A DNA stretch of 64,000 nt from Epithemia pelagica (lineage: Eukaryota; Protista; Bacillariophyta), in the NCBI GenBank assembly GCA_946965045.2, contig OX337242.1, forward strand, positions 2,816,467 to 2,880,466. Reading direction: 5' to 3'. The notes under the pieces were generated by a model, which saw only the letters and a list, made by a program, of their open reading frames with translations, made no database searches and was not told where the DNA came from. The position numbers and the translations under genes are program-made. This document shows, piece after piece, positions 36,111 to 61,792 of the stretch (the stretch's first letter is position 1; every line of letters begins with the position of its first letter).

Positions 36111-37892
36111 ATGAAGAAGACAAAGACTTCATCCAAGCATAAGAGCAACTCTTCTCGTCGCAACCGACCTCCAGGAATCATTCATGTGTATCAATCCGCT
36201 CAGACTTCTATCCGACATGAGCCATACTGCTTTGATACTGACGACTTCACATTACTTCTCTGTGAAATGTTCTCCCTGTGTCTACCAGGGGATGATGTTC
36301 AACAAGCCTTCATCCAACACAGTTTGCCGTACCTTAAATCTGTTCTTCGTCCTTTCTTAAGGCCAAGTGTCCCTCATATTCCTATTTTCATCATAGAAAT
36401 CAAGCGGGGATTTAAAGAACTACAGTTGACACGTTCATCAATATCACATCATGACCTACGAATACAGGAAGCCATTCCTTTACAGCTGACGCATGAATTG
36501 CATGGTGTATTCATGCTAGACTGTACATTGTCCAGGACACACCGTAAACCAAGAATTCCGTACAACCAACCCTACTACGAAGTGATACACCGTACACGAA
36601 CCTCCAGGGAATTCTGTTCTACTGAATTTGACCACATTTTTCGCACCGTCATAATTATTTTCCCCTATGCATCAGTATTTTGGACAACTGCCTTTACCTC
36701 GGACAATTCCAAATTTCTTTGTGAACTACAGTGTGGCATTGGCAAATCTATCACCACTTTGTCACTTACTCCATTACCACTTTCCTGGTTACGTCTTGTT
36801 TATACAACTGGTGAACCAGCGTTGGGAAGCTTCATCAAGTCTATAAACAAAGTATGGACAATCAATGATGTTGTTTCCAATGAATTGCCCAAAGTTATTC
36901 ACAGCATTCAATTTGACGACGGTGATGTTGATACTCCTCTTCTACCACCTGACTGTATCGGTGACAACATTATTAACAAAATCCAAGATCGCCGTACATT
37001 TTACCATGCTTTATTTGAAAAATCAGGATCCAATAAAATTGGCTGTCGCAGATATGTCACTGGTGCACTGTATCGTTCCATCCGTGGTTCCTCGGCCTAT
37101 GTTTTAAACCCAAGATCTGAAGAAAGACGAATCCACGCATTCCAGACTACTATTTTGGACAGCAACAAACGGCCAGTTGGACAATCCTACATGGTCGTGT
37201 CCTATGTATCATTGTCTGAGAAGCTATATCATGACTTTGCTTCTGTGGCAAACTTATACGTCTGAGACAAGAATGTTTCAAGCTGTGGGAACTCCAGGAG
37301 AAACACAGGAGACAACGGACAAATGAGTGGGTATGGAATCACGTTCAACCGTTATCAGCAACAATTAAAATCAATACCAATCTCCATGGACAATACATCA
37401 CTCAACAATAATGTAGGGCAGTTATGCTCCACGGTTGGGACAAGAATTCAACAACTCTATCCGGGAATATTGCCTTTGTTTACATCTTTGCGTAAACAGG
37501 CAGATATTGATGTCCCTCAAGATTTGGGTGGGACAGACGGATTTTGTTCCAACATCGCAGTAAGTGTTGATTTGGAAAACTCATCCCATGTTGATATCAA
37601 CGACGCTAGTGTTTGCTTCGTTGTATTTTCCGAAACCATGCCACATACTACAAAGAACTGGTTTTTCATTTTTCCAGATGTTCTGCTGAAAAGAGATGGC
37701 CGTACTTATAATGGACTGGTGATTGATTTATCACATGGCGTGACAATTCCATTCGACGGTCGTGTCATCCGTCATTACACTTCCAAACATGAGTGTGCCT
37801 TTGGTTCCGATGGAACAATTGGTCACACAGTGGGTTGGTTTTTCGGTACCTCATTTCCGGCCTTGACTTCATCTTCCAGTACTACCCCGTGA
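36111..37892 (+). pseudogene. Protein with a C-terminal TET/JBP-like 2OG-Fe(II) dioxygenase domain; in-frame TGA at 37263-37265
   Basis: ORFs 36060 and 37323 share a frame (NLYV*DKNVSSCGNSRRNTGDNGQMSGYG). HxD motif SHVDINDAS, NWFFIFP, and distal His in LSHGVTIPFDGRVIRHYTS. Confidence 0.65.
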
Positions 37893-41873: not shown

Positions 41874-44256
41874 CGAGGAAGGGTCCGTAAAAGAGTTGCC
41901 AAAGACAGCAAGGTTGAAACGAAGTCTATGTTCTTCGTTGAGATTACCATCAAAATTGTCAGGTACTACTTCCGTAGCAGGACCAGGTTAGGGGGTGGGG
42001 GAATCTTTGGCCGTCTCTTCGGTTTGGTCTTTTGCAGATACATTCCTTTCAGGAGATGATGACTGCCGTGAATGATGTTTGGAAATACCTTTTTTTGGAG
42101 GACTCTTTTTCTGTCTCCCTCTTTTCTTTTTTGTGCCATCAGTAGTCACAGTGGCAGCCTTATTTGAAGCAGTAGGGGAACGTTGCTTGGACGTAGAAGA
42201 ATGTTGTTTTGATGCAACATTTGTCAGAGAGGAGTCGGATGAAAAGTCGGATTTCTCCTCCTCATAAGTGCTGCCTTCTTCCTCAATGTCAGATAGGCTA
42301 GTTTCCTTGGTCTTCTTCTGTCGCTTAAGTTTGTTGAGCAAGGGTCGAAGCAATTTCATGTCTTCTTTGGTAATTACCACCTCCTCCAAGTCATGGTCTT
42401 CGGTCTCTTTTCTTTTCTTGTTCTGTCGGCCAGACATGATACAACTTACAAGGTACCACTTCTTGGAGAGCTCTTGAGGAACGGAATTTGTTGGTTGAGC
42501 TACTACAGTTTCTGCTCCAACCACAAGTCAGCCAAGCTACCACAATGTCTTTTGCGCCGAACGAATTCCGTATCAACTTGGAAGAATATGAAACAAACAG
42601 TGGTACCAATGAAAGTGTCTCAGTGTCAAACACGACAGTTGAAAGAGGAGAAAGAGAGAGTTGAACAGCCAATGTGCAAAAGAGGTGTGCAACACCAACA
42701 GACAGAGGACCAGTGTCACGCCAAAACGACGCCCCAATTTGAAATACTTGGGGCATAAATGTATGGAATGTCACAAATGCGTTGATTTGTTTGTATCGGA
42801 AACAAATCGAAACAAAAATTCGAACATGTTATAAGTGAGGATGAAAAAATATTAATCTGTTGGATTTTTGTGCCGATTTGATGGGTCCATATTAGGATAT
42901 TTCAGAAAATAGCTTCAACAAATCAAAAAAATACAAATCTCTGGCGAGACAAGTCATATGGGAATGACTTGGGGGAAAAATGAGACGACACAAAGCAAAA
43001 ACTGACAATGGCGGTCAAATATTCTGATAGGGAGATTTGGGAAAGATCGTTGATTACTCACGAACCTACCGGTAACATCTTCAAGAGAACTATCAGAACC
43101 ATCAAACACGTGAGTTTCATGGATAACCATTGTTCATGGAGCAAGAAAACAGACGATTTGTGGGCAGCTCCAAATATTTTTAGAAATGAACGATAGGTAT
43201 TGAAAAAACGTTAGGTTTTACAGTAAGGAAAAATAACGCTAGGATTTGCCGAACTGCATATTAATCTGTATTTTTTCTCATGCGCGAAATAACCTTTGCG
43301 TTGAAATATTGAGTAACAGATCCACTTTGCAAGTCTCCCATGATTCCCGCAAAAATTATACCCTAAGGAAATTTAGGTCTAGATTCTAATTTTGTACCAG
43401 AGCCCGTAGCTTTCTACAGGTTGCACTTGAGCTGCATATTTTGCATATGAGCTCCCATAGGTACAGCTAGGTATGGCCCTTTTTGCACTTGAGCTTTGGT
43501 TTTGATATGCCACTTTGCACTTGAGCTCCAAAACCAATTAAGCCGGGCTCTGGTGCGCCATTTTTTCTCCCGCGCGATTATATTCAATATGACCATTGTA
43601 ACATGACAACAAGGACAGGGACTAACGCTATAGGAGTTTTGTCTCAATGATAATCCTAAGGATTACCCCCCCCCCCAGCGGGGGTGTTCTTGAGGGAGTA
43701 ATTTCGTTGAAACACCCCCTTCTCTGTTCGCTGGATCTTGACGGTAGGCATATCTCATTTCCTCCACCACGATAACAACACGACAATCAAACTTTGTTGT
43801 TGCTGGTGACCTCCAATGGCCACCCCATCATGATCCGACCATCATATGCTTCATCTGGGTACCATGGCAGTGCATTGTGAGGGACACAGTGGATTCGGGC
43901 CACTCTAGGAAATGACCAATACAGTGACGCCTAATACAGGCACAATAGGAGACCATGATGGCATGAAAATACATGAGAGTTGATGTTTTGCTATCAATGC
44001 AGCGCGTAACTACTACTGTTATGAGTATTGTAGATCAATAGGTGTTCAAACAATGCAAGATCAGAGCCATATTGTCCCTTTGAGTTGCTTCGTTCGAAAT
44101 TGTGAGACGTCGCGTCCGTGCCTGTGCCACGAGGCATGGCGCCTATGAGTCTGATGCACAACAGCCTTAACCTTTAAACTTTGGTGATGCAGATGCATTC
44201 TACACTATTGGTTTGAGGTCTATGACTGGGAAGACAGGTTTCAAGAGTTCAAATGG

Positions 44257-45366
44257 GTGCACAACAACCTGTGCAACACCATGGCCCGTGTTGTTATCGT
44301 GGTGGAGGAAATGAGATATGCCTACCGTCAAGAAATAGGTTATTATTTACCCCCAAGCAGGGGCGAGAATCTGGTCGCACAAAAAGAAGAATCTGTATTC
44401 TCACCCCCAAGGCGCGACGGAAAGTCCCCGAGGTTGATACAAAACTCCAAAACCACACATGCATTCATCACGGTGTTGGAGGTGCAGTGGTTGATAACAA
44501 AGTCTATAATGTCGACATCCTCTCACAAGCGAACCCGAAGGTCTCAAAAGGCTGTCAGGAAAGCCTTCGGCACCCGTAGTGCCTCCGCACCGCCTTATAC
44601 AACGCAGAATCCAGATGATAGCAGACCCATCGCCGAAACTACACCTGCACCTCAATCTCAAGAAGCCAACACCGACCCTGTCTCCACCGGCAACGCGACC
44701 TCGTCGGTTGCTTTGTTGCCCTCTGCTTCCTCTGGTGTTCCGTACGAAACTCGGCAAATCTGCCCTACTCAACCAGGAAGCAACGGACAACCTTCCAACA
44801 GGTCTGAACCGTCCTCAACAAGAGCAATGGACAGTTCAATCTCGTCGGTGTCAACTACACCACGCTTCCATGCGATCCCTCCACCGGTCTTTCAACCCTT
44901 TACGTTATTTCCCACAGTGCCACCACAACGTCAGACCACCACAGCTTCCGCTTCAAACAACAGCAACACTTCAACTTCCGTCCAAAGCAGGGTCTTGTCT
45001 TCATCCTTTCACGTTTTGCATCGTCGCGATTCCATTGGACTTGTTCAATTTGGTACGCAATCTTCCCCTCCCAAGCCCATGAATGTGCAGAGTCCAAAAG
45101 AGGCGGACGCTTCCACACCAGCTGGTACTTTGGGAACCGAAAGAAATGAGCAAACGTCAACCACAACCATGCACAACAACCCTCAGCAAGCCACCACTCC
45201 GTACACTGTTGCTACTGCCGCCGCGCCTCCGACTGCACAAAGCACCGGCACTGATTCGTCATCATCCCTTGAACTCCTCGGTTCCGGTCTTAATCTCACA
45301 CGTCGGCCACCCACTTCAGCAATGCAACCTTATATACATCCTTACCTGAAGTTACAAGTACCCTAA
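44257..45366 (+). CDS. Ser/Thr/Pro-rich ORF of unknown function in module D; its stop is supplied by the CCC-TAA of the next core
   Basis: The ORF ends KLQVP* exactly at 45361 CCCTAAGG. Confidence 0.35.
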   Translation: MHNNLCNTMARVVIVVEEMRYAYRQEIGYYLPPSRGENLVAQKEESVFSPPRRDGKSPRLIQNSKTTHAFITVLEVQWLITKSIMSTSSHKRTRRSQKAVRKAFGTRSASAPPYTTQNPDDSRPIAETTPAPQSQEANTDPVSTGNATSSVALLPSASSGVPYETRQICPTQPGSNGQPSNRSEPSSTRAMDSSISSVSTTPRFHAIPPPVFQPFTLFPTVPPQRQTTTASASNNSNTSTSVQSRVLSSSFHVLHRRDSIGLVQFGTQSSPPKPMNVQSPKEADASTPAGTLGTERNEQTSTTTMHNNPQQATTPYTVATAAAPPTAQSTGTDSSSSLELLGSGLNLTRRPPTSAMQPYIHPYLKLQVP

Positions 45367-45852
45367 GGATATTTGCCTTTTTTGGGTGTCTTTAGTACTA
45401 GACACCGTAGGATTTGAACGTGTGCATATGAGCACAAGGGGCTATAGTATCTGTGCATATGAGCACTGATATATATGCCTTTTGTTGCAAAAGAGCACTG
45501 CCCCTTGTGCAGATGAGCACAGAATGTCTATGCGCCGCTCAAGTCTAATTTCTAAGCACTCATATTCAATATGAGTCCTTAATTTCATTCATTACTAACC
45601 ATTACCGCACTCTTAGTTGTTCCCCCATTCTTTGGCGCGAAAAGCTCGCCTGCGTGCCCCTTCGCGCCAAACATCTTCACCTGAAAACCTCAATTGGCCC
45701 AACATCTTCACCTGAAAACCTCAATTGGCCCAACAAAAGGTCATTGTTGTTTCATGAATTATGACTCTTGCAAAGAGGCCCATCCTTGCTTTTGCTTGAG
45801 AGTCGGCTGGTTATGTCTCTTCCTCTGTTCCATGCACACGAGAAAACCAGCA

Positions 45853-46616
45853 ATGGCTACCAACAATGGGCCTGGAACGCCATCTCCATCCCGGAGACGG
45901 CCTGTAAAGAAGATCCGTTCCGATCAGGGCATTGGCTTGTCATGTTTAGATGCTACAATTGTGACACCCTTTGGTATGGGATGCGGCATATGCAAAAAAT
46001 CATTCGGAGAAAGTCTTTGGTCCATGCAGCGGCATCTAAATCAACATGGAGTCTGTGTCTCAGCAACCGACAACCAACTCCTTGTTGCAAGAAAACAGTC
46101 CCTTGAGCAAATTTTGCAAGAAGACCCTCATACCGCAAAAAACTTCTTCACGGGGAGGTCTGTTCTTGGATATTCCTGCAGGTGTCTTGTTGGTTGGACA
46201 AGACTCAGCAATGTTATGCGTCATCTCTCCTCGCCTAACTCCTGTGGAGCCATTGGGCCTGAGAGGGAACAATTGCAGGTCACTTCTTATGGGAGGCTGG
46301 TATCTATGACTGCTGTCAGTATGAAATATTCCCAAGAGGATCCAATCTTGAAAACAAAGAGAGCGGTCACCCAAACTTTCCATATAATATCTGAGTAGAT
46401 GGTTGATTGTTTTGTTCCTTTGTTTCATCCATTGGCTCAGGAGGAACACTACTCTTCCAAGCCAGATGGAGCAACCTTTCAAGAACGGATGGAAAATTTG
46501 CTTTCTCTGACAACCACTACCGGCAAAGATGAAGTCAACGAACCCATACTCAAGTTTTTTTATGATTTTGGAGAGAAGTGGTTGTTGCATGGCGCTCCAA
46601 TTCATGTGAAAATGGT
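45853..46616 (+). pseudogene. Type A module ORF (C2H2 fingers, TLH-like N-terminus), in-frame TAG at 46396, truncated at a core
   Basis: MATNNGPGTPSP...GMGCGICKK...QRHLNQH...YSCRC...RH. It ends PIHVKMVP at CCCTAAGG 46617. Confidence 0.75.
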
Positions 46617-46692
46617 CCCTAAGGATAAACTAGGTCTCTACGTAGAGCTATGTAGGTCCTGGCTTCCCACCCTCCCCTCCTACTATTCCCCT

Positions 46693-46792
46693 TCATCCCG
46701 CCTTCGCACAGCCCTCATCCCGCCTTCGCACAGCCCCTTATCCCACCTTCGCACAGCCCCTCATCCCACCTTCGCACAGCCCCTCATCCCAC
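46693..46792. repeat. 22-23-bp subterminal tandem repeat x4 in the type E leader
   Basis: TCATCCC(G/A)CCTTCGCACAGCCC(C). Confidence 0.9.
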
Positions 46793-47040
46793 AAGGTACA
46801 ATCAAAACCTATAGTAATTATTATTGCCTTTCCCTTGGGACTGCCAAGGTCATTTGGCCCATATGAATTTCTATGGGCCCAATGACCTCACTCCACCCCA
46901 TCTATCTATCTCTCGTCTCGCTCTCATTGGTACCTTGCACAGTTCCTCCATTAACCATGTCAGATTCTTCCCCGTTGTTTGACCCTAAGGAGAAAGTGCC
47001 CCCTAGCGTACACCCTACGTAATCTTGGTATTGCACGTAG

Positions 47041-47415
47041 TGTCTCAGTGTTGCATGTAAGCATAGCCCTAGTGTCTTAGCATTGTATGTAAGCAAGGCC
47101 CCTTGTGTCTCAGCATTGCACGTAAGCAAAGCCCCTTGTGTCCCAGTGTTGCATGTCCATTAGACCTATTCTCCAAGCTGCATACTCTTTTCAGATATAG
47201 TGAATACATATGCCTCATCATATTCCTAGCGTGCCATGACAGACTCATTGCTAACAGGTCTATTATTTCATCAGGACCTATACAATATCTCCATAGGGTA
47301 TGAATTGGGGTCATCTCGTTTGAAATTTTGAAGATTTCCTGTGAATGACCTGCATTGGGCCTTTTTGTCTTGAAGATTTCCTGTGAATGACCCTGCATTG
47401 GGCCTTTTTGTCTTG
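47041..47415. repeat. Subterminal repeats in the type B leader: 32-33-bp x3.5 (47041-47156) and a duplicated GAAGATTTCCTGTGAATGACC(C)TGCATTGGGCCTTTTTGTCTTG (about 47330-47415)
   Basis: Read directly from the sequence; mirrored at 59320-59700. Confidence 0.85.
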
Positions 47416-47446
47416 CCCATTTCGACCATCCAGCTGCAAACCGACA

Positions 47447-49305
47447 ATGGCAGCAAATCCTACTGCTGATCCTAAGATGGAGCTGTTTGATCCCTTAAGT
47501 GGGAAGGCCTTTCGGGGTCATCATGGTCTCCGTGTTTCCCACTATGGTGTTTTCTGTGTGGAGTGTCGAATGTCTGTGGCGAGCTCACCTTCATCCCTCC
47601 AACGCCACCTCAAGAAACATCCAAGCTGGGAGCTCATCATCTCCCTTCAAGATTTGAAGAATCTGTGTTCTAAGCACATTGAAGAATTAAAACACAATCA
47701 AGATATTACAATCAGCCACCTACGAATTCAAGATGGCTACAAGTGTTCTTGCGGCAATTTGTTCAAGGAACAAAGGTACCTGAAGAACCACTGTCGATAC
47801 AACGGGGCATGCCAGTCATCAAGTGCTACAAAAATTAAGGCTGTTGTAACTGTTTGTTACAGATTTGTTCATGTGGATTCGAGTCATCCTTCAGACGATT
47901 GGAATATCCATAATACAGAGACCATCCTTGAAGGGTTTGCTTCCCCACGTGGTGGTCTCAAGACATACTGCCAATTACTCCACGGACTGTGTTTGTCCCA
48001 TCGAGAAGACTTTTTGAAAAAAATGACTGAGATGATAGGTTGGGCAAATCAAGAGCCAAACCAAGCCCATGAACCTATGTTGTGTGCACTAGTGTCTGAC
48101 TCTAGTGTTTGGTTGGAGTCTCATGTCAGACTCCATGTCAGTCGAACACCTGGGAATTTCCGAGCAGGGTTGATGGTCTTTGATGGTTCGGATGTTGACG
48201 AGGTTAGCCAAAACACAACATTTGTGTTCAGAGAGAACAATGATGTGGTTGGGAGGGAACTCAAGAAATTGTTGTGTTTTCTCTTTCGGCAAGACATCAA
48301 CAACAAGTGGCATGACCGGATTCATGGCGAAAAGGAAAAGAAGAAAGAGTCTGTTCATGAAATTTTGTAGGGCCTGTTGTTGGATACTATGTTGAATGTC
48401 ATGGATGATGCGATGGTTGTTGTTTACTGTCTGAGTCGGATGCTCAGAATACATCAAGATAAGGGACCGGAGTTTGTTTCACCTGGGTATTCAGCCAGTA
48501 TTTGCTCAGATGTTCTTTGCTTGTTGCGAGGGGCAGTGTGTTCGGCTATTGCGGACTTTGTAGACAATGTCATTCCGCAGGCCACAGCATTGGTGAAACA
48601 AGTCCGACAAAGTTCTGTACTACATACCCTTTCTCCATTTGTGAGGAGACTACAAGAACTACAAAGTCAACAACCAACGGAGTGTAAGGTCACTGTGACC
48701 TCCACAGGAGACATAGTGGTGCAGAGTCATAAGTTTGCATATGGTCTTTGGTCCAGCCTACTCTCGGTATTGAAAGTCCACTGCGACAGTGTCTGCTCAG
48801 AAATCTTTTCTAGCTTGGACTGGATGGCTTTCACTGACCTCAATGGATGCCCAATTCACGTGATACAGGATGACTATGGTCGGTTCAATTATTCCATTGA
48901 ATCTAATGCGACTCAATTTGATGGAAATGACTTGACAATCAATGACCTCTCGCCTGAATTGGATATGAAAATGACCAGGTTCCGTGGATTGGTGGATGTG
49001 ATTTTCCATGGGACGGGTGGTGGATCAATGTGCTATGAGGAACTTGGTCGTATGTCTCAGAGAAGTTTGACATGGCACAACAAAACAATCTACTATCATT
49101 CTGCATCAATCAAACGGTTCAACCACAAACAAAAACAACGGCAGGTCACTACAGAGCGGAAGCTGTCACAACAAATGGCACGGTACTACCTGCTGTACCA
49201 GACAGCCATCAGCAGGTACACAGTAGAAGGATCAGGGTTTGATTTGGGAAAAGACTCCCTCCCGATGCAAAAGGAAATCCAGAATCTCTTTGGGCTTTCT
49301 AACCC
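47447..49305 (+). pseudogene. Type B module ORF: C2H2 finger + helical region + YR-like motif; in-frame TAG at 48368; truncated at a core
   Basis: HYGVFCVECRMSV...LQRHLKKH; YKCSC...NHC; VIFHGTGGGSMCYEEL...SIKRF...ERKLSQQMARYYLLY. The two ORFs share a frame. Confidence 0.75.
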
Positions 49306-49816
49306 CCCTAAGTATTTTCCCCTTTTTTGGCATGTTTTAGTACTAGAGACCGTAGGATTTGAACGTGTGCATATGAGCAGAATATCCTACAGTGCTTTGT
49401 TGCATATGAGCAAATTTGTTATGCTCATTTTGCAGATGAGCTGCAATTTTTTAGAACCCCCGTTGCGATTGAGCCAGGAATTTACCTATGCCCTCTATTT
49501 ACTTCTCAAGTGGTCATATTCAATATGGCCATACTTGTTCATTGGCTCATAAAGCTACTAGCGCTAGATTTTTGCTTTTTTGGCGGGAAAGCAAAAAGTC
49601 TGTAGAAGAATACTTCTTGTACACGAAAAAGGCAAAAGTTAGGATTTTTGTGGAATCACCTTGCGTAGGGCCTGTTTTGCTACAAGAATGATTTCTCTTT
49701 GGGCCTTTGTGGACAACATTGCTTTGGGCCTTTTTCAAAGCACTATTTGTTGTCAATGACCTTTGCTTGGGCCTGTCTGGTCACACCGTCTCTGATACTC
49801 ACAAAGACTGGTGACA

Positions 49817-51620
49817 ATGGCTCCCCCTGTGAATGTTGGGCCAGGCACTCCATCACCTTCACGAAGACGACCGTGCAAGAAAACAAAGACAGCAGAGAGC
49901 AAGGTATCATGTCTGCAGGTGACCCTTGTAACCCCCTTTGGTATGGGGTGTAAACAATGCGGCAAGCCCTTTGGATCAAGTCTGTGGTCGATGCAGAGAC
50001 ATCTCAACCCACATGGTGTCTCTGTGTCCCGGTCGGAAAATCAGATTCTACTGAAGAAACACCATGCCCTTCGGCAATGTTTAATGGAAGATTTGTCCAG
50101 GTCATCGCAATATTTGACAGGAAAACATGTCAAGGGATATTCCTGTCGTTGCCTAGTTGGGAGCACCAAGGCCCATAATGTCTACAGACATCTGTCCTCC
50201 AGTCACAGCTGCGGTGCTCCGTCTCCAACTGAAGAGGATCTGCAATTGAGTACATGTGGTCGACTGATTTCTATTATCGCGTTACAGAAGATGTATGCCA
50301 GTCAAGAGTCATCACCTCTCAAAATGACCACAGATATGATCAAGACGACCATTTCTACACTCCCCGAAATGTATGAGTGCTTGGTCCCACTCTTTTATCC
50401 TTTGGCTCAGCAAGATGAGGCGTACGCAAATAGGCCCAAGGGAAGGACATTCCTGGACCGGGTTCATCTGTTATATGACTCCGTAAATATTCGATCCCAT
50501 AGCAATCAACCACTCTTTGATTTGCTCTATGACCAAGGGGAAAAATGGCTCACTGAGCATGTGCCGCTGCATGTTCAGAAAGTTCCTGCAAACTATCGAT
50601 CAAAGCTCTTGGTCTTTGAAGGAACAAGAACTCCCAACGAAGGTTGTACTTACACCTTCACTAAGCACCCGAGACGACTTCTCCCAGAGTTCAAGAAATT
50701 TCTCTCCTTCTTGCTCCACAACAACAACAAGCTTCTACATTTCAAAACAGATCTTCCCTCTGTATTGGCTAAGTTGTGTTTGGAGACTGCAGAGTCGGTT
50801 CAACACCACACAACAGTGATGACCTACTGCACTGGTTGGGTCCTTCGGCAACAAGAGGGTTCACAGCAATTCTCTCTATGCAGTCCATCATATATTGCAA
50901 GTATGATGGCATCAGTGCTTACCATACTGCGGGCCAGTATTTGTTCTCTAATATACTCCATGGGGACTGGTTACCACAAGAGGGCTATGACCTTGGTTGA
51001 GAAGGCCCAACAGTCCATCACAACCAATTTTTTGGGTAGCATGATCCGCCGGATGCGGGAAAAAGAGATTTTGACTCCATCTAGCCAAAAAGTCTCTATT
51101 CAGGGAAATAAAGACATTTTGGTTGACAACTTCAGGTTTCCTTTCCCGAAGTGGTGCAAGGTTATCCCGACGATCTACGATGTATGCATGCAAGCCTTGA
51201 GCAAAGTCATTGTTGGGAATCAATGGGTCTTTCTCCTGGACAGGAGATATGGTATGGAAGTGTCATGGGACTCTGTTGGGAAGGTACGGATGTAACTTCA
51301 TTCGGCATCCAGGAGTTACACCCATGGAGATATTGTACTCTGTCAAGACTACGATACATACCACTTGGACATTGTTGCATCATACCTAGAACTGGCCTTC
51401 CACGGAACAGGCCTTGGCTCCATGAGGTACACTGAAGTTGAGAGGTGTTTATTTTCAGATACACGGTGGCATGGTGGGAGTTTCTATTACTACTCGCACT
51501 CGGACAAAAGCTTCACTGCGATGGACAATAAACACCGCAAATTGGTCGAGCATAAACTTTGTGAGTCATTGAGCCGGATTTATCTTGTCTTTCGGGTGGT
51601 TTGTCAATTGCGTGGTACTT
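49817..51620 (+). pseudogene. Type A'' module ORF: C2H2 fingers + YR-like motif; in-frame TAA at 51293; truncated at a core
   Basis: GMGCKQCGK...QRHLNPH; RM*LHSASRSY...LELAFHGTGLGSMRYTEV...SDKSF...EHKLCESLSRIYLVF. Confidence 0.75.
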
Positions 51621-52690
51621 CCCTAAGGATATTTCACTTTTGTGGAGCTTTTAGTACTAGAGACCGTAGAATTTGAACGTGTGCATATGAGCACAAAATC
51701 CTATAGTGCCTGTTGCATATGAGCAAGGATTTGTTGCGGATGAGCTGCAATTTGTTATGCTTTTGTTGCGATTGAGCAGTGGCCTTGTCTATGCCCCTTT
51801 GACCACTCCCCAAAAGCAGTCATATTCAATATGCTCTTTACTGGCCAGATACTTTTTAGAGCTATGCCAGTTAGGTTTTTGTCTCGCCCTACTCTACATA
51901 GAAGAATCAACGTAAGATTGAATTTCCCTTGGTTTGCTGTACAAAATTTCCCTGTTAACAGCTAATATGTGTGTAAAAGTGACATATATTTGTACACAAA
52001 TGACCAACTAAACTTTTTGTACAATCTTTTACCCGCCTAATGACGTTGGCATTTAACAGAAAAATCTCATTTCACCCTAAGGAGAAAGTGCCTGTCCGTA
52101 GGCCTACGTAGACTCTAGCGTCCCTAAGGATATTTGCCTTTTTTGGGTGTCTTTAGTACTAGACACCGTAGGATTTGAACGTGTGCATATGAGCACAAGG
52201 GGCTATAGTATCTGTGCATATGAGCAGTGATATATATGCCTTTTGTTGCAAAAGAGCACTGCCCCTTGTGCAGATGAGCACAGAATGTCTATGCCCCGCT
52301 CAAGTCTAATTTCTAAGCACTCATATTCAATATGAGTCCTTAATTTCATTCATTACCAACCATTACCGCACTCTTAGTTGTTCCCCCATTCTTTGGCGCG
52401 AAAAGCTCGCCTGCGTGCCCCTTCGCGCCAAACATCTTCACCTGAAAACCTCAATAGGCCCAACATCTTCACATGAAAACCTCAATTGGCCCAACAAAAG
52501 GTCATTGTTGTTTCATGAATTATGACTCTTGCAAAGAGGCCCATCCTTGCTTTTGCTTGAGAGTCGGCTGGTTATGTCTCTTCCTCTGTTCCATGCACAC
52601 GAGGAAACCAGCAATGGCTACCAACAATGGGCCTGGAACGCCATCTCCATCCCGGAGATGGCCTGTGAAGAAGATCCGTTCCGATCAGGG

Positions 52691-54573
52691 CATTGGCTTG
52701 TCATGTTTAGATGCAACAATTGTGACACCCTTTGGTATGGGATGCGGCATATGCAAGAAATCATTCGGAGAAAGTCTTTGGTCCATGCAGCGGCATCTAA
52801 ATCAACATGGAGTCTGTGTCTCAGCAACTGACAACCGACTCCTTGTTGCAAGAAAACAGTCCCTTGAGCAAATTTTGCAAGAAGACCCTAAGGATATTTC
52901 ACTTTTTTGGGAGCTTTTAGTACTAGAGACCGTAGAATTTGAACGTGTGCATATGAGCACAAAATCCTATAGTGCCTGTTGCATATGAGCAAGGATTTGT
53001 TGCGGATGAGCTGCAATTTGTTATGCTTTTGTTGCGATTGAGCAGTGGCCTTGTCTATGCCCCTTTGACCACTCCCGAAAAGCCGTCATATTCAATATGC
53101 TCTATACTGGCCAAATACTTTTCAGAGCTCTGCCAGTTAGGTTTTTGTCTTGCCCTACTCTACATAGAAGAATCAACGTAAGATTGAATTTCCTTTGGTT
53201 TGCTGTACAAAATTTCCTTGTTACAACAAACCAGCTAATATGTGTGTACGAGTGACATATATTTGTACACAAATGACCAACTAACTTTTTTGTACAATCT
53301 TTTTTCCCGCCAAATGACGCTGGCATTTCACAGAAAAATCTCATTCCACCCATCACTAGTTCTCATCAAAATCCCATTTTGACCATTCCTAGTTTATGCC
53401 TCTAGGTCTTTGTACCTACCCATCATTCGTTCAGTAAATTGGGCCCAATGCAATTCTGCAAAGGGTCATCACTCCCTTTCTTTGATGAACGATGAAAGAT
53501 GTCTCTTGAGCACTCTCAGCAAAACCTCTATGGACAATGGCTTCCCCCTCTAATAATGGGCCAGGGACTCCTTCTCCATCAAGGAGGAGACCAACGAAGA
53601 AAAAAAAGGAAGAGAACAAACTACAGGCTGTCATTGGCTTGTCATGTTTAGATGCAACAATTGTGACACCCTTTGGTATGGGATGCGGCATATGCAAGAA
53701 ATCATTCGGAGAAAGTCTTTGGTCCATGCAGCGGCATCTAAATCAACATGGAGTCTGTGTCTCAGCAACTGACAACCGACTCCTTGTTGCAAGAAAACAG
53801 TCCCTTGAGCAAATTTTGCAAGAAGACCCTAAGGATATTTCACTTTTTTGGGAGCTTTTAGTACTAGAGACCGTAGAATTTGAACGTGTGCATATGAGCA
53901 CAAAATCCTATAGTGCCTGTTGCATATGAGCAAGGATTTGTTGCGGATGAGCTGCAATTTGTTATGCTTTTGTTGCGATTGAGCAGTGGCCTTGTCTATG
54001 CCCCTTTGACCACTCCCGAAAAGCCGTCATATTCAATATGCTCTATACTGGCCAAATACTTTTCAGAGCTCTGCCAGTTAGGTCTTTGTCTTGCCCTACT
54101 CTACATAGAAGAATCAACGTAAGATTGAATTTCCTTTGGTTTGCTGTACAAAATTTCCTTGTTACAACAAACCAGCTAATATGTGTGTACGAGTGACATA
54201 TATTTGTACACAAATGACCAACTAACTTTTTTGTACAATCTTTTTTCCCGCCAAATGACGCTGGCATTTCACAGAAAAATCTCATTCCACCCATCACTAG
54301 TTCTCATCAAAATCCCATTTTGACCATTCCTAGTTTATGCCTCTAGGTCTTTGTACCTACCCATCATTCGTTCAGTAAATTGGGCCCAATGCAATTCTGC
54401 AAAGGGTCATCACTCCCTTTCTTTGATGAACGATGAAAGATGTCTCTTGAGCACTCTCAGCAAAACCTCTATGGACAATGGCTTCCCCCTCTAATAATGG
54501 GCCAGGGACTCCTTCTCCATCAAGGAGGAGACCAACGAAGAAAAAAAAGGAAGAGAACAAACTACAGGCTGTC
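52691..54573. repeat. Tandem duplication with a 941-bp period (52691-53631 / 53632-54573)
   Basis: CATTGGCTTGTCATG at 52691 and 53632; cores at 52886 and 53827 are 941 bp apart. Confidence 0.9.
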
Positions 54574-54769
54574 GATGTCACGCTAGTGACCCCCTTTGGT
54601 ATGGGGTGTCGCCTATGTGGGAAACCGTTCGGAACCAGTCTATGGTCCATGCAAAGGCACCTTTATGGCCATGGTGTGTCTGTCTCACGTTCTGAAAGCC
54701 AGTCACTGATAGAACATCAAATGACCCTAAGGAGAAAGTGCCTGTCCGTAGGCCTACGTAGACTCTAGC

Positions 54770-54874
54770 GTCCCACTGCAGAACAGCCCCCATCCCACTT
54801 GTCCCACTGCAGAACCGCCCTCTGTCCCACTGCAGAAGTGCCCTGTCCTACTGCAGAACAGCCTGCGGTCCCAC
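54770..54874. repeat. About 20-23-bp subterminal repeat (GTCCCACTGCAGAA..) in the type B' leader, directly abutting the telomere
   Basis: Several CC(C/T)ACTGCAGAA units, then GTCCCAC followed by TTAGGG. Confidence 0.85.
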
Positions 54875-55372
54875 TTAGGGTTAGGGTTAGGGTTAGGGTT
54901 AGGGTTAGGGTTAGGGTTAGGGTTAGGGTTAGGGTTAGGGTTAGGGTTAGGGTTAGGGTTAGGGTTAGGGTTAGGGTTAGGGTTAGGGTTAGGGTTAGGG
55001 TTAGGGTTAGGGTTAGGGTTAGGGTTAGGGTTAGGGTTAGGGTTAGGGTTAGGGTTAGGGTTAGGGTTAGGGTTAGGGTTAGGGTTAGGGTTAGGGTTAG
55101 GGTTAGGGTTAGGGTTAGGGTTAGGGTTAGGGTTAGGGTTAGGGTTAGGGTTAGGGTTAGGGTTAGGGTTAGGGTTAGGGTTAGGGTTAGGGTTAGGGTT
55201 AGGGTTAGGGTTAGGGTTAGGGTTAGGGTTAGGGTTAGGGTTAGGGTTAGGGTTAGGGTTAGGGTTAGGGTTAGGGTTAGGGTTAGGGTTAGGGTTAGGG
55301 TTAGGGTTAGGGTTAGGGTTAGGGTTAGGGTTAGGGTTAGGGTTAGGGTTAGGGTTAGGGTTAGGGTTAGGG
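54875..55372 (+). repeat. Telomere array (TTAGGG)83
   Basis: 498 bp of perfect hexamer up to the N gap. Confidence 0.98.
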
Positions 55373-55572
55373 NNNNNNNNNNNNNNNNNNNNNNNNNNNN
55401 NNNNNNNNNNNNNNNNNNNNNNNNNNNNNNNNNNNNNNNNNNNNNNNNNNNNNNNNNNNNNNNNNNNNNNNNNNNNNNNNNNNNNNNNNNNNNNNNNNNN
55501 NNNNNNNNNNNNNNNNNNNNNNNNNNNNNNNNNNNNNNNNNNNNNNNNNNNNNNNNNNNNNNNNNNNNNNNN
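55373..55572. other. Scaffold gap of exactly 200 N joining two telomeric contig ends
   Basis: Round-number gap between oppositely oriented telomere arrays. Confidence 0.95.
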
Positions 55573-56012
55573 CCCTAACCCTAACCCTAACCCTAACCCT
55601 AACCCTAACCCTAACCCTAACCCTAACCCTAACCCTAACCCTAACCCTAACCCTAACCCTAACCCTAACCCTAACCCTAACCCTAACCCTAACCCTAACC
55701 CTAACCCTAACCCTAACCCTAACCCTAACCCTAACCCTAACCCTAACCCTAACCCTAACCCTAACCCTAACCCTAACCCTAACCCTAACCCTAACCCTAA
55801 CCCTAACCCTAACCCTAACCCTAACCCTAACCCTAACCCTAACCCTAACCCTAACCCTAACCCTAACCCTAACCCTAACCCTAACCCTAACCCTAACCCT
55901 AACCCTAACCCTAACCCTAACCCTAACCCTAACCCTAACCCTAACCCTAACCCTAACCCTAACCCTAACCCTAACCCTAACCCTAACCCTAACCCTAACC
56001 CTAACCCTAACC
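55573..56012 (-). repeat. Telomere array (CCCTAA)73 + CC
   Basis: Perfect hexamers, then a direct join into a module ORF. Confidence 0.98.
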
Positions 56013-59000
56013 ATAACATTGCTGAGTCTTGTCCAACCAACAAGACACCTGCAGGAATATCCAACAACAGACCTCCCCGTGAAGAAGTTTTTTGCAGTAT
56101 GAGGGTCTTCTTGCAAAATTTGCTCAAGGGACTGTTTTCTTGCAACAAGGAGTCGGTTGTCAGTTGCTGAGACACAGACTCCATGTTGATTTAGATGCCG
56201 CTGCATGGACCAAAGACTTTCTCCGAATGATTTCTTGCATATGCTGCATCCCATACCAAAGGGTGTCACAATTGTAGCATCTAAACATGACAAGCCAATG
56301 CCCTGATCGGAACGGATCTTCTTCACAGGCCGTCTCCGATATGGAGATGGCGTTCCAGGCCCATTGTTGGTAGCCATTGCTGGTTTCCTCGTGTGCATGG
56401 AACAGAGGAAGAGACATAACCAGCCGACTCTCAAGCAAAAGCAAGGATGGGTCTCTTTGCAAGAGTCATAATTCATGAAACAACAATGACCTTTAGTTGG
56501 GCCAATTGAGGTTTTCAGGTGAAGATGTTGGGCCAATTGAGGTTTTCAGGTGAAGATGTTTGGCGCGAAGGGGCACGCAGGCGAGCTTTTCGCGGGAACA
56601 ACTAAGAAAGCGGTAATGGTAAGTAATGAATGAAATTCAGTACTCATATTGAATATGAGTGCTTAGAAATTAGACTTGAGCGGGGCATAGACATTCTGTG
56701 CTCATCTGCACAAGGGGCAGTGCTCTTTTGCAACAAAAGGCATATATATCAGTGCTCATATGCACAGATACTATAGCCCCTTGTGCTCATATGCACACGT
56801 TCAAATCCTACGGTGTCCACAATAGTACTAAAGACACCCAAAAAAGGCAAATATCCTTAGGGCCATACCTAGCTGTACCTATGGGAGCTCATATGCAAAA
56901 TATGCAGCTCAAGTGCAACCTGTAGAAAGCTACGGGCTCTGGTACAAAAACTAGAATCTAGACCTAAATTTCCTTAGGTAAGCACTGATGCCATCATACT
57001 TGCAATATATGATGGACTGCATAGAGAGAATTGCTGTGAACCCTCTTGTTTCCGAAGGACCCAACCAGTGCAGTAGGTCATCACTGTTGTGTGGTGTTGA
57101 ACCGACTCCACAGTCTCCAAACACAACTTAGCCAATACAGAGGGAAGATCTGTTTTGAAATGTAGAAGCTTGTTGTTGTTGTGGAGCATAAAGGAGAGAA
57201 ATTTTTTGAACTCTGGGAGAAGTCGTCTCGGGTGCTTAGTGAAGGTGTAAGTACAACCTTTGTTGGGAGTTCTTGTTCCTTCAAAGACCAAGAGCTTTGA
57301 TCGATAGTTTGCAGGAACTATCTGAACATGCAGCGGCACATGCTCAGTGAGCCATTTTTGCCCTTGGTCATAGAGCAAATCAAAGAGTGGTTGATTGCTA
57401 TGGGTTTGAATATTTACGGAGTCATATAACAGATGAACTCGGTCCAGGAATGTCCTTCCCTTGGGCCTATTTGCGTACGCCTCATCTTGCTGAGCCAAAG
57501 GATAAAAGAGTGGGACCAAGCACTCATACATTTTGGGGAGTGTAGAAATGGTCGTCTTGATCATATCTGTGGTCATTTTGAGAGGTGATGACTCTTGACT
57601 GGCATACATCTTCTGTAATGCGATAATAGAAATCAGTCGACCACATGTACTCAATTGCAGATCCTCTTCAGTTGGAGAAGGGGCACCGCAGCTGTGACTG
57701 GAGGACAGATGTCTGTAGACATTATGGGCCTTGGTGCTCCCAACTAGGCAACGACAGGAATATCCCTTGACATGTTTTCCTGTCAAATATTGCGATGACC
57801 TGGACAAATCTTCCATTAAACATTGCCGAAGGGCATGGTGTTTCTTCAGTAGAATCTGATTTTCCGACCGGGACACAGAGACACCATGTAGGTTGAGATG
57901 TCTCTGCATCGACCACAGACTTGATCCAAAGGGCTTGCCGCATTGTTTACACCCCATACCAAATGGGGTTACAAGGGTCACCTGCAGACATGATACCTTG
58001 CTCTCTGCTGTCTTTGTTTTCTTGCACGGTCGCCTTCGTGAAGGTGATGGAGTGCCTGGCCCAACATTCACAGGGGGAGCCATTGTCACCAGTCTTTGTG
58101 AGTATCAGAGACGGTGTGACCAGACAGGCCCAAGCAAAGGTCATTGACAACAAATAGTGCTTCGAAAAAGGCCCAAAGCAATGTTGTCCACATAGGCCCA
58201 AAGAGAAATCATTCTTGTAGCAAAACAGGCCCTACGCAAGGTGATTCCACAAAAATCCTAACTTTTGCTTTTTTCGTGTACAAGAAGTATTCTTCTACAG
58301 ACTTTTCGCTTTCTCGCCAAAAAAGCAAAAATCTAGCGCTAGTAGCTTTATGAGCCAATGAACAAGTATGGCCATATGGAATATGACCACTTGAGAAGTA
58401 AATAGAGGGCATAGGTAAATTCCTGGCTCAATCGCAACGGGGGTTATGAAAAATTGCAGCTCATCTGCAAAATGAGTATAACAAATTTGCTCATATGCAA
58501 CAAAGCACTGTAGGATATTCTGCTCATATGCACACGTTCAAATCCTACGGTCTCTAGTACTAAAACATGCCAAAAAAGGGGAAAATACTTAGGTGTTCGA
58601 CTGACATGGAGTCTGACATAAGACTTCAACCAAACACTAGAGTCAGACACTAGTGCACACAACATAGGTTCATGGGCTTGGTTTGGCTCTTGATTCGCCC
58701 AACCTATCATCTCAGTCATTTTTTTCAAAAAGTCTTCTCGATGGGACACACAGTCCGTGGAATAATTGGCAGTATGTCTTGAGACCACCACGTGGGGAAG
58801 CAAACCCTTCAAGGATGGTCTCTGTATTATGGATTTTCCAATCGTCTGAAGGATGACTCGAATCCACATGAACAAATCTGTAACAAACAGTTACAACAGC
58901 CTTAATTTTTGTAGCACTTGATGACTGGCATGCCCCGTTGTATCGACAGTGGTTCTTCAGGTACCTTTGTTCCTTGAACAAATTGCCGTGAGAACACTTG

Positions 59001-60839
59001 TAGCCATCTTGAATTCGTAGGTGGCTGATTGTAATATCTTGATTGTGTTTTAATTCTTCAATGTGCTTAGAACACAGATTCTTCAAATCTTGAAGGGAGA
59101 TGATGAGCTCCCAGCTTGGATGTTTCTTGAGGTGGCGTTGGAGGGATGAAGGTGAGCTCGCCACAGACATTCGACACTCCACACAGAAAACACCATAGTG
59201 GAAAACACGGAGACCATGATGACCCCGAAAGGCCTTCCCACTTAAGGGATCAAACAGCTCCATCTTAGGATCAGCAGTAGGATTTGCTGCCATTGTCGGT
59301 TTGCAGCTGGATGGTCAAAATGGGCAAGACAAAAAGGCCCAATGCAGGGTCATTCACAGGAAATCTTCAATACAAAAAGGCCCAATGCAGGTCATTCACA
59401 GGAAATCTTCAAAATTTCAAACGAGATGACCCCAATTCATACCCTATGGAGACATTGTATAGGTCCTAATGAAATAATAGACCTGTTAGCAATGAGTCTG
59501 TCATGGCACGCTAGGAATATGATGAGGCATATGTATTCACTATATCTGAAAAGAGTATGCGGCTTGGAGAATAGGCTTATAGGACATGCAACACTGGGAC
59601 ACAAGGGGCTTTGCTTACGTGCAATGCTGAGACACAAGGGGCCTTGCTTACATGCAATGCTAAGACACTAGGGCTATGCTTACATGCAACACTGAGACAC
59701 TACGTGCAATACCAAGATTACGTAGGGTGTACGCTAGGGGGCACTTTCTCCTTAGGTGCTCCATCTGGCTTGGAAGAGTAGTGTTCCTCCTGAGCCAATG
59801 GATGAAACCATCTCCTCAGATACCATATGGAAAGTTTGGGTGACCGCTCTCTTTGTTTTCAAGATTGGATCCTCTTGGATATATTTCATACTGACAGCAG
59901 TCATAGATACCAGCTTCCCACAAGAAGTGACCTGCAATTGTTCCCTCTCAGGCCCAATGGCTCCACAGGAGTTAGGCGAGGAGAGATGACGCATAACATT
60001 GCTGAGTCTTGTCCAACCAACAAGACACCTGCAGGAATATCCAAGAACAGACCTCCCCGTGAAGAAGTTTTTTGCAGTATGAGGGTCTTCTTGCAAAATT
60101 TGCTCAAGGGACTGTTTTCTTGCAACAAGGAGTCGGTTGTCAGTTGCTGAGACACAGACTCCATGTTGATTTAGATGCCGCTGCATGGACCAAAGACTTT
60201 CTCCGAATGATTTCTTGCATATGCTGCATCCCATACCAAAGGGTGTCACAATTGTAGCATCTAAACATGACAAGCCAATGCCCTGATCGGAACGGATCTT
60301 CTTCACAGGCCGTCTCCGATATGGAGATGGCGTTCCAGGCCCATTGTTGGTAGCCATTGCTGGTTTCCTCGTGTGCATGGAACAGAGGAAGAGACATAAC
60401 CAGCCGACTCTCAAGCAAAAGCAAGGATGGGTCTCTTTGCAAGAGTCATAATTCATGAAACAACAATGACCTTTAGTTGGGCCAATTGAGGTTTTCAGGT
60501 GAAGATGTTGGGCCAATTGAGGTTTTCAGGTGAAGATGTTTGGCGCGAAGGGGCACGCAGGCGAGCTTTTCGCGGGAACAACTAAGAAAGCGGTAATGGT
60601 AAGTAATGAATGAAATTCAGTACTCATATTGAATATGAGTGCTTAGAAATTAGACTTGAGCGGGGCATAGACATTCTGTGCTCATCTGCACAAGGGGCAG
60701 TGCTCTTTTGCAACAAAAGGCATATATATCAGTGCTCATATGCACAGATACTATAGCCCCTTGTGCTCATATGCACACGTTCAAATCCTACGGTGTCCAC
60801 AATAGTACTAAAGACACCCAAAAAAGGCAATCCTTAGGG
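56013..60839 (-). mobile_element. Right-arm stack of telomere-terminal modules; cores (as CCTTAGG) at 60832, 59750, 58587 (ACTTAGG), 56972, 56855; order from the interior A, B, A'', C, A, telomere
   Basis: Same leader families as the left arm in reverse complement, with different truncation points. Truncated ORFs at 60357-59757, 59293-58594, 58083-56979 and 56377-56013. Confidence 0.85.
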
Positions 60840-61337
60840 TCATCTAGCATGGCTGAATCAACAAATCGCATGGGAGCAGCGGGATACAGAAGCGAAAAGA
60901 GTCCATGATCATGACAGTGATGACAACGATGACGAAACCAATAGTATCACAGAGATTCAGATACAGCCTTCCGATGTATTGCTTGGAAGAACGAAGGACT
61001 GTCGAGATCATCCAGGCAACAAACGGGTCCAAATTTGGGTACAATTGTATTTTGAAGACACTATGAAACATGCACAAAGTATGGCAAGGTGGAATTGTCG
61101 GAACGAATTTTTCAAATGGTTGGAGCCTCGGGAGGTCGGTTTCTCAAATTGGACCGAGCGCAGTGGACCGAACTGGACGAAACGACGGCGGTGCACAAAA
61201 TTGCTCATTTCTTTCGTCGACAACGGGAATTAACACGAGAACAAGAAGAAACGAAGAGGATGTACGACGCACAAAGTCCTCTCAAGACACCTTACCCGAA
61301 TGGAGTATCACCACGAAAGCGTTCCTCGGATGGCTAG
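60840..61337 (+). pseudogene. DUF6824-type diatom gene, 5'-truncated at the module core and frameshifted near 61065
   Basis: The frame is open from the junction (GHLAWLNQQ...QPSDVLLGRTKDCRDHPGNKR), followed by GGRFLKLDRAQWTELDETTAVHKIAHFFR in another frame. Confidence 0.7.
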
Positions 61338-61792
61338 ATACCAATTGAGTCGCTATATGTCTTGTGGTTGTCCCTCTGATGGGTTGACTACTTTGATCCA
61401 TCAACGCATATTTGGATCATGGTCAATTACGACAAATTGCAAGACGAGTCCAGTACTGTCCTCTGCCCTCTGCCAATTGTCGGCTCTATGATGCTCCCTA
61501 TATAGCCTGTGCGCGATCAGGCTGGTGCAACTTCCACGTGCTGAAGGGCGAATGTGTGAACACAATGACAACGCTGGTCGAGTTGGTTTCCAATCCAAAT
61601 CGAGGACATGAGTTTCCTTTTCGTGCAGGAGGAACAATACTAGTAGTAAAGATTCCGTTTGAAACCTACACGCACCACACATATTGTAGGGTGTCACTCA
61701 ACTAGTTGTAGGAAAGGTTTAGCGATTGGGCAAAGCAACAACCTACCTAAGATTATTTGGATCTCTACGCTTGCGCAGTTCTTGCGGACTGC

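Follow-up and report, generated by a model that had tools for sequence, protein, structure and literature searches.

Genes for telomere-linked helicases (TLH) have been on record for decades, as the Y' elements of yeast, as tlh in Schizosaccharomyces pombe and in many other fungi, and they are switched on when telomeres fail. To our knowledge, nobody knows how these genes spread or why they sit at chromosome ends. In Y' elements the helicase gene reads towards the telomere; the elements lie in tandem subtelomeric arrays that amplify when telomeres fail, carry telomere repeats of normal orientation between the copies, and are spread, mostly at full length, by homologous recombination or through Ty1 cDNA. 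We describe here a related system in the diatom Epithemia pelagica, in a stretch of 64,000 nucleotides (GenBank assembly GCA_946965045.2, contig OX337242.1, positions 2,816,467 to 2,880,466; the whole stretch is called the window below), in which two chromosome ends carry stacked copies of an element whose gene encodes zinc fingers, a recombinase-like domain and a RecQ-like helicase. These copies are truncated at the 3' end, whereas Y' arrays are mostly full-length; since they are many, recent and independently truncated, the rule by which they were joined can be read base by base.

Fungal TLH proteins combine two C2H2 fingers, a 'TLH domain' and a RecQ-like helicase (10.1101/2024.02.27.582403; PMC1635262), and the regions encoding them occur singly or in arrays, complete or cut short, with single telomere repeats at their borders (10.1101/2024.02.27.582403). 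The diatom protein has the plan of those of Magnaporthe oryzae, Fusarium oxysporum, Ustilago, S. pombe (tlh1/2) and also the choanoflagellate Monosiga, and fungal TLH is the last gene before the telomere, the place taken by the diatom element (10.1101/2024.02.27.582403; PMC1635262). A preliminary description of the window, made from its sequence alone, had known of no described diatom system like it; the published fungal arrays (10.1101/2024.02.27.582403) nevertheless provide a precedent, and judged by predicted fold the diatom system is a member of the TLH/Y' family, which extends that family from opisthokonts to stramenopiles. Membership was assessed from the two N-terminal zinc fingers and the RecQ-like helicase, both present, from a TLH domain of some 250 residues immediately preceding that helicase, which is matched by fold, and from telomere-adjacent arrays flanked by telomere repeats, to which one stack (on contig L011, below) is an exception. 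The diatom system differs from fungal TLH in its host, in having many diverged families per genome and short, dense stacks (47 bp to 2.3 kb), and in its junctions, where the interstitial telomere unit is single and inverted, homology is confined to (A)CCCT and acceptor sites are reused. The comparison suggests that the recombinase-like nature of the TLH domain, the inverted unit and the microhomology are new, whereas TLH arrays with single telomere repeats were known. The literature searched yielded no paper that describes the TLH domain as recombinase-like, links TLH or YRF1 to a tyrosine recombinase, or reports a recombinase-like domain, an inverted unit or microhomology in TLH.

Stacked modules at two chromosome ends

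The core sequence CCTAAG[GT] has 20 matches in the window where 9.4 are expected, a count that none of 100 shuffled sequences reached. Twelve cores lie on the + strand within 43362-54732 (the left arm) and five on the - strand within 56855-60838 (the right arm); a further match (54873-54879) is a telomere boundary, and the remaining 43 kb contain two only. All 17 arm cores read towards the nearer telomere. The leader types A, A', A'', B, B', C, D and E were found where the preliminary description had placed them, with module lengths of 47-2323 bp as it had given. Its structural claims are likewise borne out: the donor end is fixed while the point of attachment in the acceptor varies, the junctions are polar and non-reciprocal, and an interrupted copy never resumes downstream in about 45 junctions checked. 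Repeated rounds of such joining account for the stack, and on both arms host genes are cut at the first core. Two of its family assignments had to be revised: E, thought to be a single copy, is a multi-copy forward family elsewhere, and B', taken for a variant of B, is the end of an element attached the other way round, its helicase gene lying on the opposite strand. Copies that are 98-99% identical between the arms are nevertheless cut at different points, which supports recent activity.

Other stacks were compared on contigs of the European Nucleotide Archive (ENA) assembly ERZ21939226, here labelled L001/L008, L002, L010 and L011. Telomere-ward polarity extends to these contig ends (16/17 '+' cores on L001, 5/5 on L002 and 3/3 on L010). 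The leaders and cores recur at these three contig ends and also in one internal stack, on L011. There, about nine modules of the same orientation (4104-14330) sit inside a 52-kb contig, ctg1087l, at a distance of 10-40 kb from its ends, with 10/12 cores '+' and nine of those ten having recognised termini. The ORFs (open reading frames) flanking that stack have no Pfam match; the stack may be an internalised old chromosome end or belong to an unplaced repeat contig.

Within the window the two arms end in telomere tracts, (TTAGGG)83 and (CCCTAA)73, that face each other across 200 N (Table 1). The gap therefore joins separate chromosome or contig ends, its flanks are not continuous DNA, and it is probably a head-to-head scaffolding join of two chromosome ends rather than part of one chromosome. 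ORFs reported across it are translation artefacts of the telomere repeats. The product of a left-arm ORF is recorded on a 521-kb contig and the scaffold runs for more than 2.8 Mb upstream of the window, which fits a scaffold assembled from several contigs. The arms are thus independent subtelomeres, and serve as two replicates within a single window.

Both telomere tracts abut arbitrary break points with an overlap of 1 nt, on the left inside B' repeats (CCCAC/TTAGGG, the slash marking the junction here and below) and on the right inside an A ORF (GTTATG/GTTAGGG), so that telomerase evidently heals broken modules directly. No module begins with telomere-healed sequence, and the donors were therefore element termini, not ordinary chromosome ends. 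The label 'telomere-replacing', which had been given to the element, is accordingly too strong: normal telomerase-type tracts cap both ends and adjoin broken modules directly, so that the elements are subtelomeric and take the place of chromosome tips but not of the telomere in its function.

Anatomy of the element

A complete element, at L002 13282 to ~17880, is about 4.6 kb long and consists of an end region and one long gene. Forward modules read, in order, core, an end region of ~450 nt with four iterated ~30-bp motifs, two copies of a TGTGAAATGACC...GGGCC-type motif, and an ORF pointing to the telomere. The terminus is (A)CCCTAAGG, a single inverted telomere unit, followed by the leader; the complementary strand therefore ends in ...CCTTAGGG-3'. 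Among about 45 modules examined, the start almost always falls at one of some nine conserved termini, and CCCTAAGG(A) is common to families whose leaders are otherwise unalignable.

All B' modules that are long enough to tell carry the TLH helicase and C-terminal ORF on the opposite strand (L001 3773-5711, L002 11926-13281 and L011 10274-11760), with its stop codon ~400 nt from the core; the reversed ORF is also present in a chimeric copy at L010 10618-11562. In the reading direction of that ORF, B' forms the 3' trailer of an element whose last letters are ...CCTTAGGG. The first 18 nt of B and B' are the same, as is the layout of their sub-terminal regions, so both ends of the B family seem to carry the terminus. 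The simplest reading of these sequences is that the element has two similar ends, each with one telomere unit, either of which could become attached to the end of a chromosome. Such a two-ended element, as a free linear copy, would bear TTAGGG-3' on both strands, a ready substrate for telomerase. Terminal inverted repeats were not found in the relatives on the short metagenomic contigs L003, L004 and L007.

Inverted ends might also be left by breakage-fusion-bridge cycles, in which an uncapped end fuses to an end with a one-repeat telomere and the dicentric then breaks, leaving an inverted partner tip. B' does resemble an inverted chromosome tip, with its helicase gene reading toward a single TTAGGG, and in another organism a head-to-head (TTAGGG)n/CCCTAAC junction lies beside a TLH homologue. 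We nevertheless think this origin improbable: ~75-85% of the modules are forward and would need donors whose gene reads away from the telomere; telomere-adjacent sequences are random break points, and no module starts with one; and every junction holds exactly one unit.

The junction in the other organism is on a 99.5-kb metagenome contig, L006, where a short interstitial (TTAGGG)n tract at 15340-15395 follows the TLH homologue and is joined to a single CCCTAAC and unrelated DNA. Its donor side obeys the rule seen in the diatom, but the acceptor kept its telomere repeats. Two further features were noted on the diatom contigs. On L002 a ~180-bp satellite occupies at least 3.4 kb after the near-complete F-type element and runs to the contig end (17900-21316), and an E-type module at L001 1705-3772 contains a minus-strand Ty1/copia-like reverse-transcriptase fragment (weak RVT_2 match) that is probably the remnant of a nested retrotransposon.

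The encoded protein

The module ORFs are the 5' parts of a gene for zinc fingers, a tyrosine-recombinase/topoisomerase-IB-like domain and a RecQ-like helicase. Two N-terminal C2H2-type fingers (Cx2C...Hx4H motifs) are found in every module ORF, and the B ORF matches Pfam OrsD (E 2.6e-5) and, weakly, zf-C2H2_4. DEAD and Helicase_C domains are present in the F-type copy on L002, which encodes 1067 aa, in the C-type copy on the same contig, which is 41% identical to the A'' ORF of the window, and in six homologues; one homologue is named 'helicase RecQ' by its Joint Genome Institute (JGI) source. When residues 1-720 of the F protein were searched against the full library, 184 cluster representatives matched, many of them 1300-1850 aa long and encoded on ~6-kb contigs. 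One metagenome relative lies ~570 bp from telomere-like repeats and reads toward them.

An alignment of 40 of these representatives shows no variation at R, K, R and H, and has Y in 39/40 (R529, K559, R634, H665 and Y674 of the F protein), and the order and spacing of these catalytic-type residues match the active sites of tyrosine recombinases and type IB topoisomerases. The recombinase-like domain (F-protein residues 350-720) was modelled with AlphaFold2 (AF2) at a predicted local distance difference test score (pLDDT) of 84.8. Nearly all top Foldseek matches of the model, at weak E-values, were Cre, XerH, XerA, TelA and topoisomerase I; VIA-align gave Z scores of 9.7 to XerH and 9.1 to Cre over ~147-150 residues, within a range of 9.7-8 that includes XerA/XerD. 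A fold search of Swiss-Prot placed Y'-Help1 (YRF1) of Saccharomyces cerevisiae first (E 1.5e-5), XerS/XerD next and then S. pombe Tlh1. The segment matched in Y'-Help1, residues ~358-787, lies just upstream of the helicase domain; that in Tlh1 is 843-1094 (E 0.056). The link of the TLH domain to fungi was thus made by fold only, with no fungal sequence aligned, and on these models the 'TLH domain' looks like a DNA breaking-rejoining domain.

Word-based homologue searches returned almost nothing beyond this genome, an exact look-up of a 210-aa product of L001 recovered only the same contig, and a phage DNA search with the A leader gave no match. Elsewhere in the window, an ORF at 36891-37784 (+) has a tblastn match (28% identity, E 4e-18) to residues 1304-1588, the C-terminal part, of the metagenomic TLH homologue P0013, so some TLH relatives carry the same kind of domain; for this part of P0013 there is a weak Pfam call as a Tet-like 2OG-Fe(II) oxygenase.

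The junction rule

Homology between acceptor and donor was scored at 17 junctions whose acceptor could be followed without interruption in other copies or in Logan contigs. It amounts to C at one junction, CC at two, CCC/CCT at eight, CCCT at five and CCCTA at one. These 1-5 nt always lie inside (A)CCCT(A) and never reach into a second telomere unit; every junction carries exactly one unit and none has two. The number of Cs in the product, 2 or 3, follows the acceptor (for example, TTACC/TAAGG). An A precedes CCC at ~17/31 independent junctions (tally from contexts) against a background of 27%, which makes ACCCTAAGG the probable donor terminus. Some acceptor sites served more than once: GAAGAC/CCT received A' in the window and, on other contigs, two B' variants, while GGTCAC/CC received E, A' and A. 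Across ~45 junctions there were no reciprocal products and no module starting at an internal position.

Joining of this kind looks like end-pairing rather than a fixed enzymatic crossover. The proposal that a donor end recombines into a short target and replaces everything distal to it survives as far as replacement of the tip is concerned, while the 1-5 nt of variable homology favour annealing over a fixed crossover. Six of seven termini read (T/C)CCTT on the bottom strand; a fixed cut at CCTT/AGGG like that of vaccinia topoisomerase was dropped as a candidate, because acceptors with only CC or CCT still give ...CCTAAGG.

The main rival to a transposition-like origin is host microhomology-mediated repair, and the other alternatives considered in this paper (breakage-fusion-bridge cycles, capture of cDNA and assembly artefact) are less likely than this one. 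In that case eroded ends, or ends left by collapsed forks, would have switched template or been joined onto other chromosome ends by microhomology-mediated break-induced replication (MMBIR) or alternative end joining (alt-EJ), with CCCT as the stretch that happened to pair, the TLH protein being non-catalytic and its genes an ordinary subtelomeric gene family. The homology (1-5 nt) is indeed short and variable, as annealing would leave it, the acceptor determines the C count, and the sites that are reused, ACCCT and ACCC, are the best-matching ones; telomerase heals breaks directly, and homologous recombination is at work, as seen from tandem duplications and chimeric leaders. Repair alone, however, offers no reason for a template switch to hit the same nucleotide in some nine unrelated leader families, across which the CCCTAAGG(A) terminus is conserved although the leaders are unalignable; a donor that always breaks at one point must have had a physical end or a specific nick there, and the R-K-R-H-Y set has been kept across 40 diverged homologues. 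We regard host repair alone as unlikely, though it deserves to be taken seriously.

Subtelomeres are hard to assemble, and mis-joined repeats might in principle imitate such a stack. Repeats abound in the region, two telomeres have been scaffolded together within the window, and the read-level evidence is in the form of assembled Logan contigs. Yet the same junction grammar appears on five contigs, and Logan contigs of three runs break or branch exactly at the cores, giving the native continuations that were predicted. In a biofilm metagenome run the B' terminus is joined to two other partners, and the consistent microhomology at the junctions is unlike that of random chimeras. An assembly artefact is accordingly hardly credible. 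Among the loose ends listed in the Logan contigs there was no (CCCTAA)n-leader form.

Proposed mechanism

It is an even call, in our judgement, whether the stacks are truncated mobile TLH elements that were captured end-first at chromosome ends and piled up telomere-ward. In such a scheme a free or cleaved element terminus would first pair, through the 1-5 nt of (A)CCCT(A), with the 3' strand at a chromosome end that is broken, being replicated or no longer protected. The join would then be sealed or copied, the element and the DNA beyond it becoming the new tip and the old distal DNA being lost; later this tip would break or erode and be re-capped by telomerase or by the next element. A single donor breakpoint across unalignable leader families points to ACCCTAAGG as the site of a physical end or of a specific nick, the variable pairing points to annealing with the chromosome 3' end, and the lack of reciprocal products and of resumption points to a one-ended, tip-replacing outcome. 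The donor would thus be a physical DNA end, and the recombinase-like/helicase protein is the obvious candidate to make or transfer it.

Several observations weigh against end-first capture of a mobile element. Every module in the window stops at or before box I (FHGTG.GSMRY.E) of the recombinase-like domain and none is autonomous. The domain lacks the HxxR histidine of classical tyrosine recombinases, having L/T/V at that position, and its Foldseek matches to the Protein Data Bank (PDB) are weak (E 0.03-1). The crossover is not fixed to one phosphodiester, and annealing in the course of host repair would account for this no less well than a site-specific recombinase. No module was seen to start with a right end of the abundant A family, the case for two ends coming from B/B' only, and no free linear or circular form was seen in the Logan contigs, which cannot show free forms. 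The internal stack on L011 makes the location usually but not strictly terminal, and homologous recombination (tandem duplications, a chimeric leader) also shapes the arrays.

The telomere retrotransposons HeT-A/TART of Drosophila, Athena/Terminons of rotifers, SART/TRAS of Bombyx and MoTeR of Magnaporthe likewise form polar head-to-tail terminal arrays, which grow as copies are added at the tip again and again, with telomere-like units at their termini. The diatom elements differ from them in being without a reverse transcriptase (Pfam found no such domain in module ORFs or full-length homologues), in that the fixed 5' end is proximal and the truncated 3' end distal, and in that normal telomerase repeats still cap the chromosome ends. 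Retroelement models based on HeT-A-like target-primed reverse transcription (TPRT), Athena-like G-overhang priming or TERRA-like (telomeric repeat-containing RNA) templates were rejected: the sense strand is the G-strand, the fixed 5' end is proximal, and only one telomere unit is present.

A different RNA-mediated route would start with transcripts from CCCUAAGG, whose run-off cDNA (...CCTTAGGG-3') is captured by chromosome ends; its model is yeast Y', reportedly mobilised by the Ty1 reverse transcriptase. It would explain the fixed 5' end as a physical terminus, and copia and tyrosine-recombinase (YR) retroelements are present in the genome. We judge it very improbable, as the elements encode no reverse transcriptase, the leader carries an apparent promoter and binding iterons that an RNA copy must start upstream of, and the reversed B' would call for another transcript, antisense to the first, with its start precisely at the opposite terminus.

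With Cryptons and other tyrosine-recombinase transposons, protelomerases and topoisomerase IB, the diatom system has in common a very short identity between end and target and the lack of target duplication, and its protein, by model and alignment, appears to resemble theirs in catalytic fold and in the R-K-R-H-Y set. It departs from them in the fusion of the domain to a RecQ-like helicase and in a one-ended outcome, with no circular intermediate or resuming target seen; conservative insertion, with both ends and a resuming target, is absent from the ~45 junctions. Lacking the HxxR histidine, its residue set is closer to the topoisomerase IB pentad than to tyrosine recombinases. The leads to protelomerases are weak (TelA at Foldseek rank 20; ResT/TelK clusters at 0.89 in Atlas); CCTAAGG is palindromic except for its central base, and no head-to-head dimer junction was seen. 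Helitrons also have a DNA-cutting domain and a helicase in one protein behind zinc fingers, a fixed 5' end and no target duplication, but their nuclease and helicase belong to other superfamilies; the diatom protein has no rolling-circle motifs and neither Rep nor Pif1 domains, Pfam finding DEAD/Helicase_C (SF2), and the diatom elements lie at chromosome ends.

It is tempting to go further and to suggest that TLH/Y' genes are the transposase genes of an unrecognised class of eukaryotic DNA transposon, with an enzyme in which a tyrosine-recombinase/topoisomerase-IB-like domain is fused to a RecQ-like helicase and with one telomere unit at each terminus, which would transpose end-first onto deprotected chromosome ends and bring with it a TTAGGG-3' seed for telomerase. 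This wider proposal is tentative, and we hold it to be possible but somewhat doubtful. If true, it would provide a DNA-based counterpart of the telomere retrotransposons and explain the presence of helicase genes at chromosome ends from yeast to diatoms. Whether TLH genes are selfish chromosome-end transposons, a back-up capping system, or both, is a question that can now be tested.

Homologous recombination within the arrays

The region 52886-54724 contains a 941-bp tandem duplication (52886/53827), the ORF of which is a chimera of an A' N-terminus and A-type sequence and therefore records unequal homologous exchange between modules. On L001 a block with five junctions/modules is tandemly duplicated with a period of 5395 bp (6634-17317). 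A leader on L010 is of A type for 120 nt and of B' type thereafter, and an A'' copy at L011 4104 is internally deleted.

Inventory of the modules

The features of the two arms are collected in Table 1.

Table 1. Modules, telomere tracts and assembly gap in the window, in order of position
Feature	Positions	Strand	Length	Remarks
Module C	43361..43653	+	293 bp	first of left arm, joined to unique chromosomal DNA; core + C leader
Module D	43654..45360	+	1707 bp	core CCTAAGG + unique leader
Module A	45361..46616	+	1256 bp	leader with iterated GTGCATATGAGCAC motifs; cut at GGTCCC
Module E	46617..46982	+	366 bp	forward family; 23-bp tandem repeats
Module B	46983..49305	+	2323 bp	leader with 33-bp iterons
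Module A''	49306..51620	+	2315 bp	core CCCTAAGT; cut at TTCCCT
Module A'	51621..52074	+	454 bp	leader only
Module B'	52075..52121	+	47 bp	start of inverted element end
Module A	52122..52885	+	764 bp	cut at GAAGACCCT
Module A'	52886..53826	+	941 bp	chimeric A'/A ORF; first copy of tandem duplication
Module A'	53827..54724	+	898 bp	cut at ATGACCCT
Module B'	54725..54874	+	150 bp	broken inside 23-bp repeats, telomere-capped directly
Left-arm telomere	54875..55372	+		(TTAGGG)83
Assembly gap	55373..55572	none	200 N	between telomeres
Right-arm telomere	55573..56010	-		(CCCTAA)73 on + strand
Module A	56011..56862	-	852 bp	distal-most of right arm; ORF broken at GTTATG, telomere-healed
Module C	56863..56979	-	117 bp	
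Module A''	56980..58594	-	1615 bp	98% identical to left-arm copy, cut elsewhere (CTTACC)
Module B	58595..59757	-	1163 bp	99% identical to left-arm copy; cut at GAACACCT
Module A	59758..60839	-	1082 bp	first of right arm, joined to host gene region at GATGACCC

The left-arm modules preserve the gene to different extents. In the A module at 45361 the ORF starts at 45853 with the zinc-finger N-terminus, and in the E module at 46617 it is cut after 10 codons (MSDSSPLFDP). The B module at 46983 has an ORF from 47447 with OrsD/C2H2-like fingers and one in-frame stop at 48368, and ends upon reaching the recombinase-like box I (~49010); in the A'' module at 49306 the ORF runs from 49811 to 51295, with a frameshifted continuation to box I (FHGTGLGSMRYTE, ~51400). 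The acceptor site GAAGACCCT, at which the A module at 52122 is cut, is reused elsewhere with B' donors.

Module D stands apart. It has inverted repeats of 47 bp that match perfectly (43736-43782 / 44287-44333) and are separated by 504 bp, and a Ser/Thr/Pro-rich ORF of 369 aa without a Pfam match, and there is no TLH homology on either of its strands; it may be a different passenger or a non-autonomous element that uses the same terminus.

The A leaders of the right arm (56800-56862 and 60775-60839) have a 7-nt insertion, TAGTACTATTGTGGACACC, relative to those of the left arm, and the proximal one is missing 4 nt just after the core (GGATTGCC against GGATATTTGCC). Beside the first right-arm core, the unique DNA at 60850-61340 encodes a DUF6824-like diatom protein in shifted frames, with the motifs PSDVLLGRTKDCRDHPGNKR and GGRFLKLD; this core lies ~10 nt upstream of an ATG at 60850, the frame of which stops after 20 codons.

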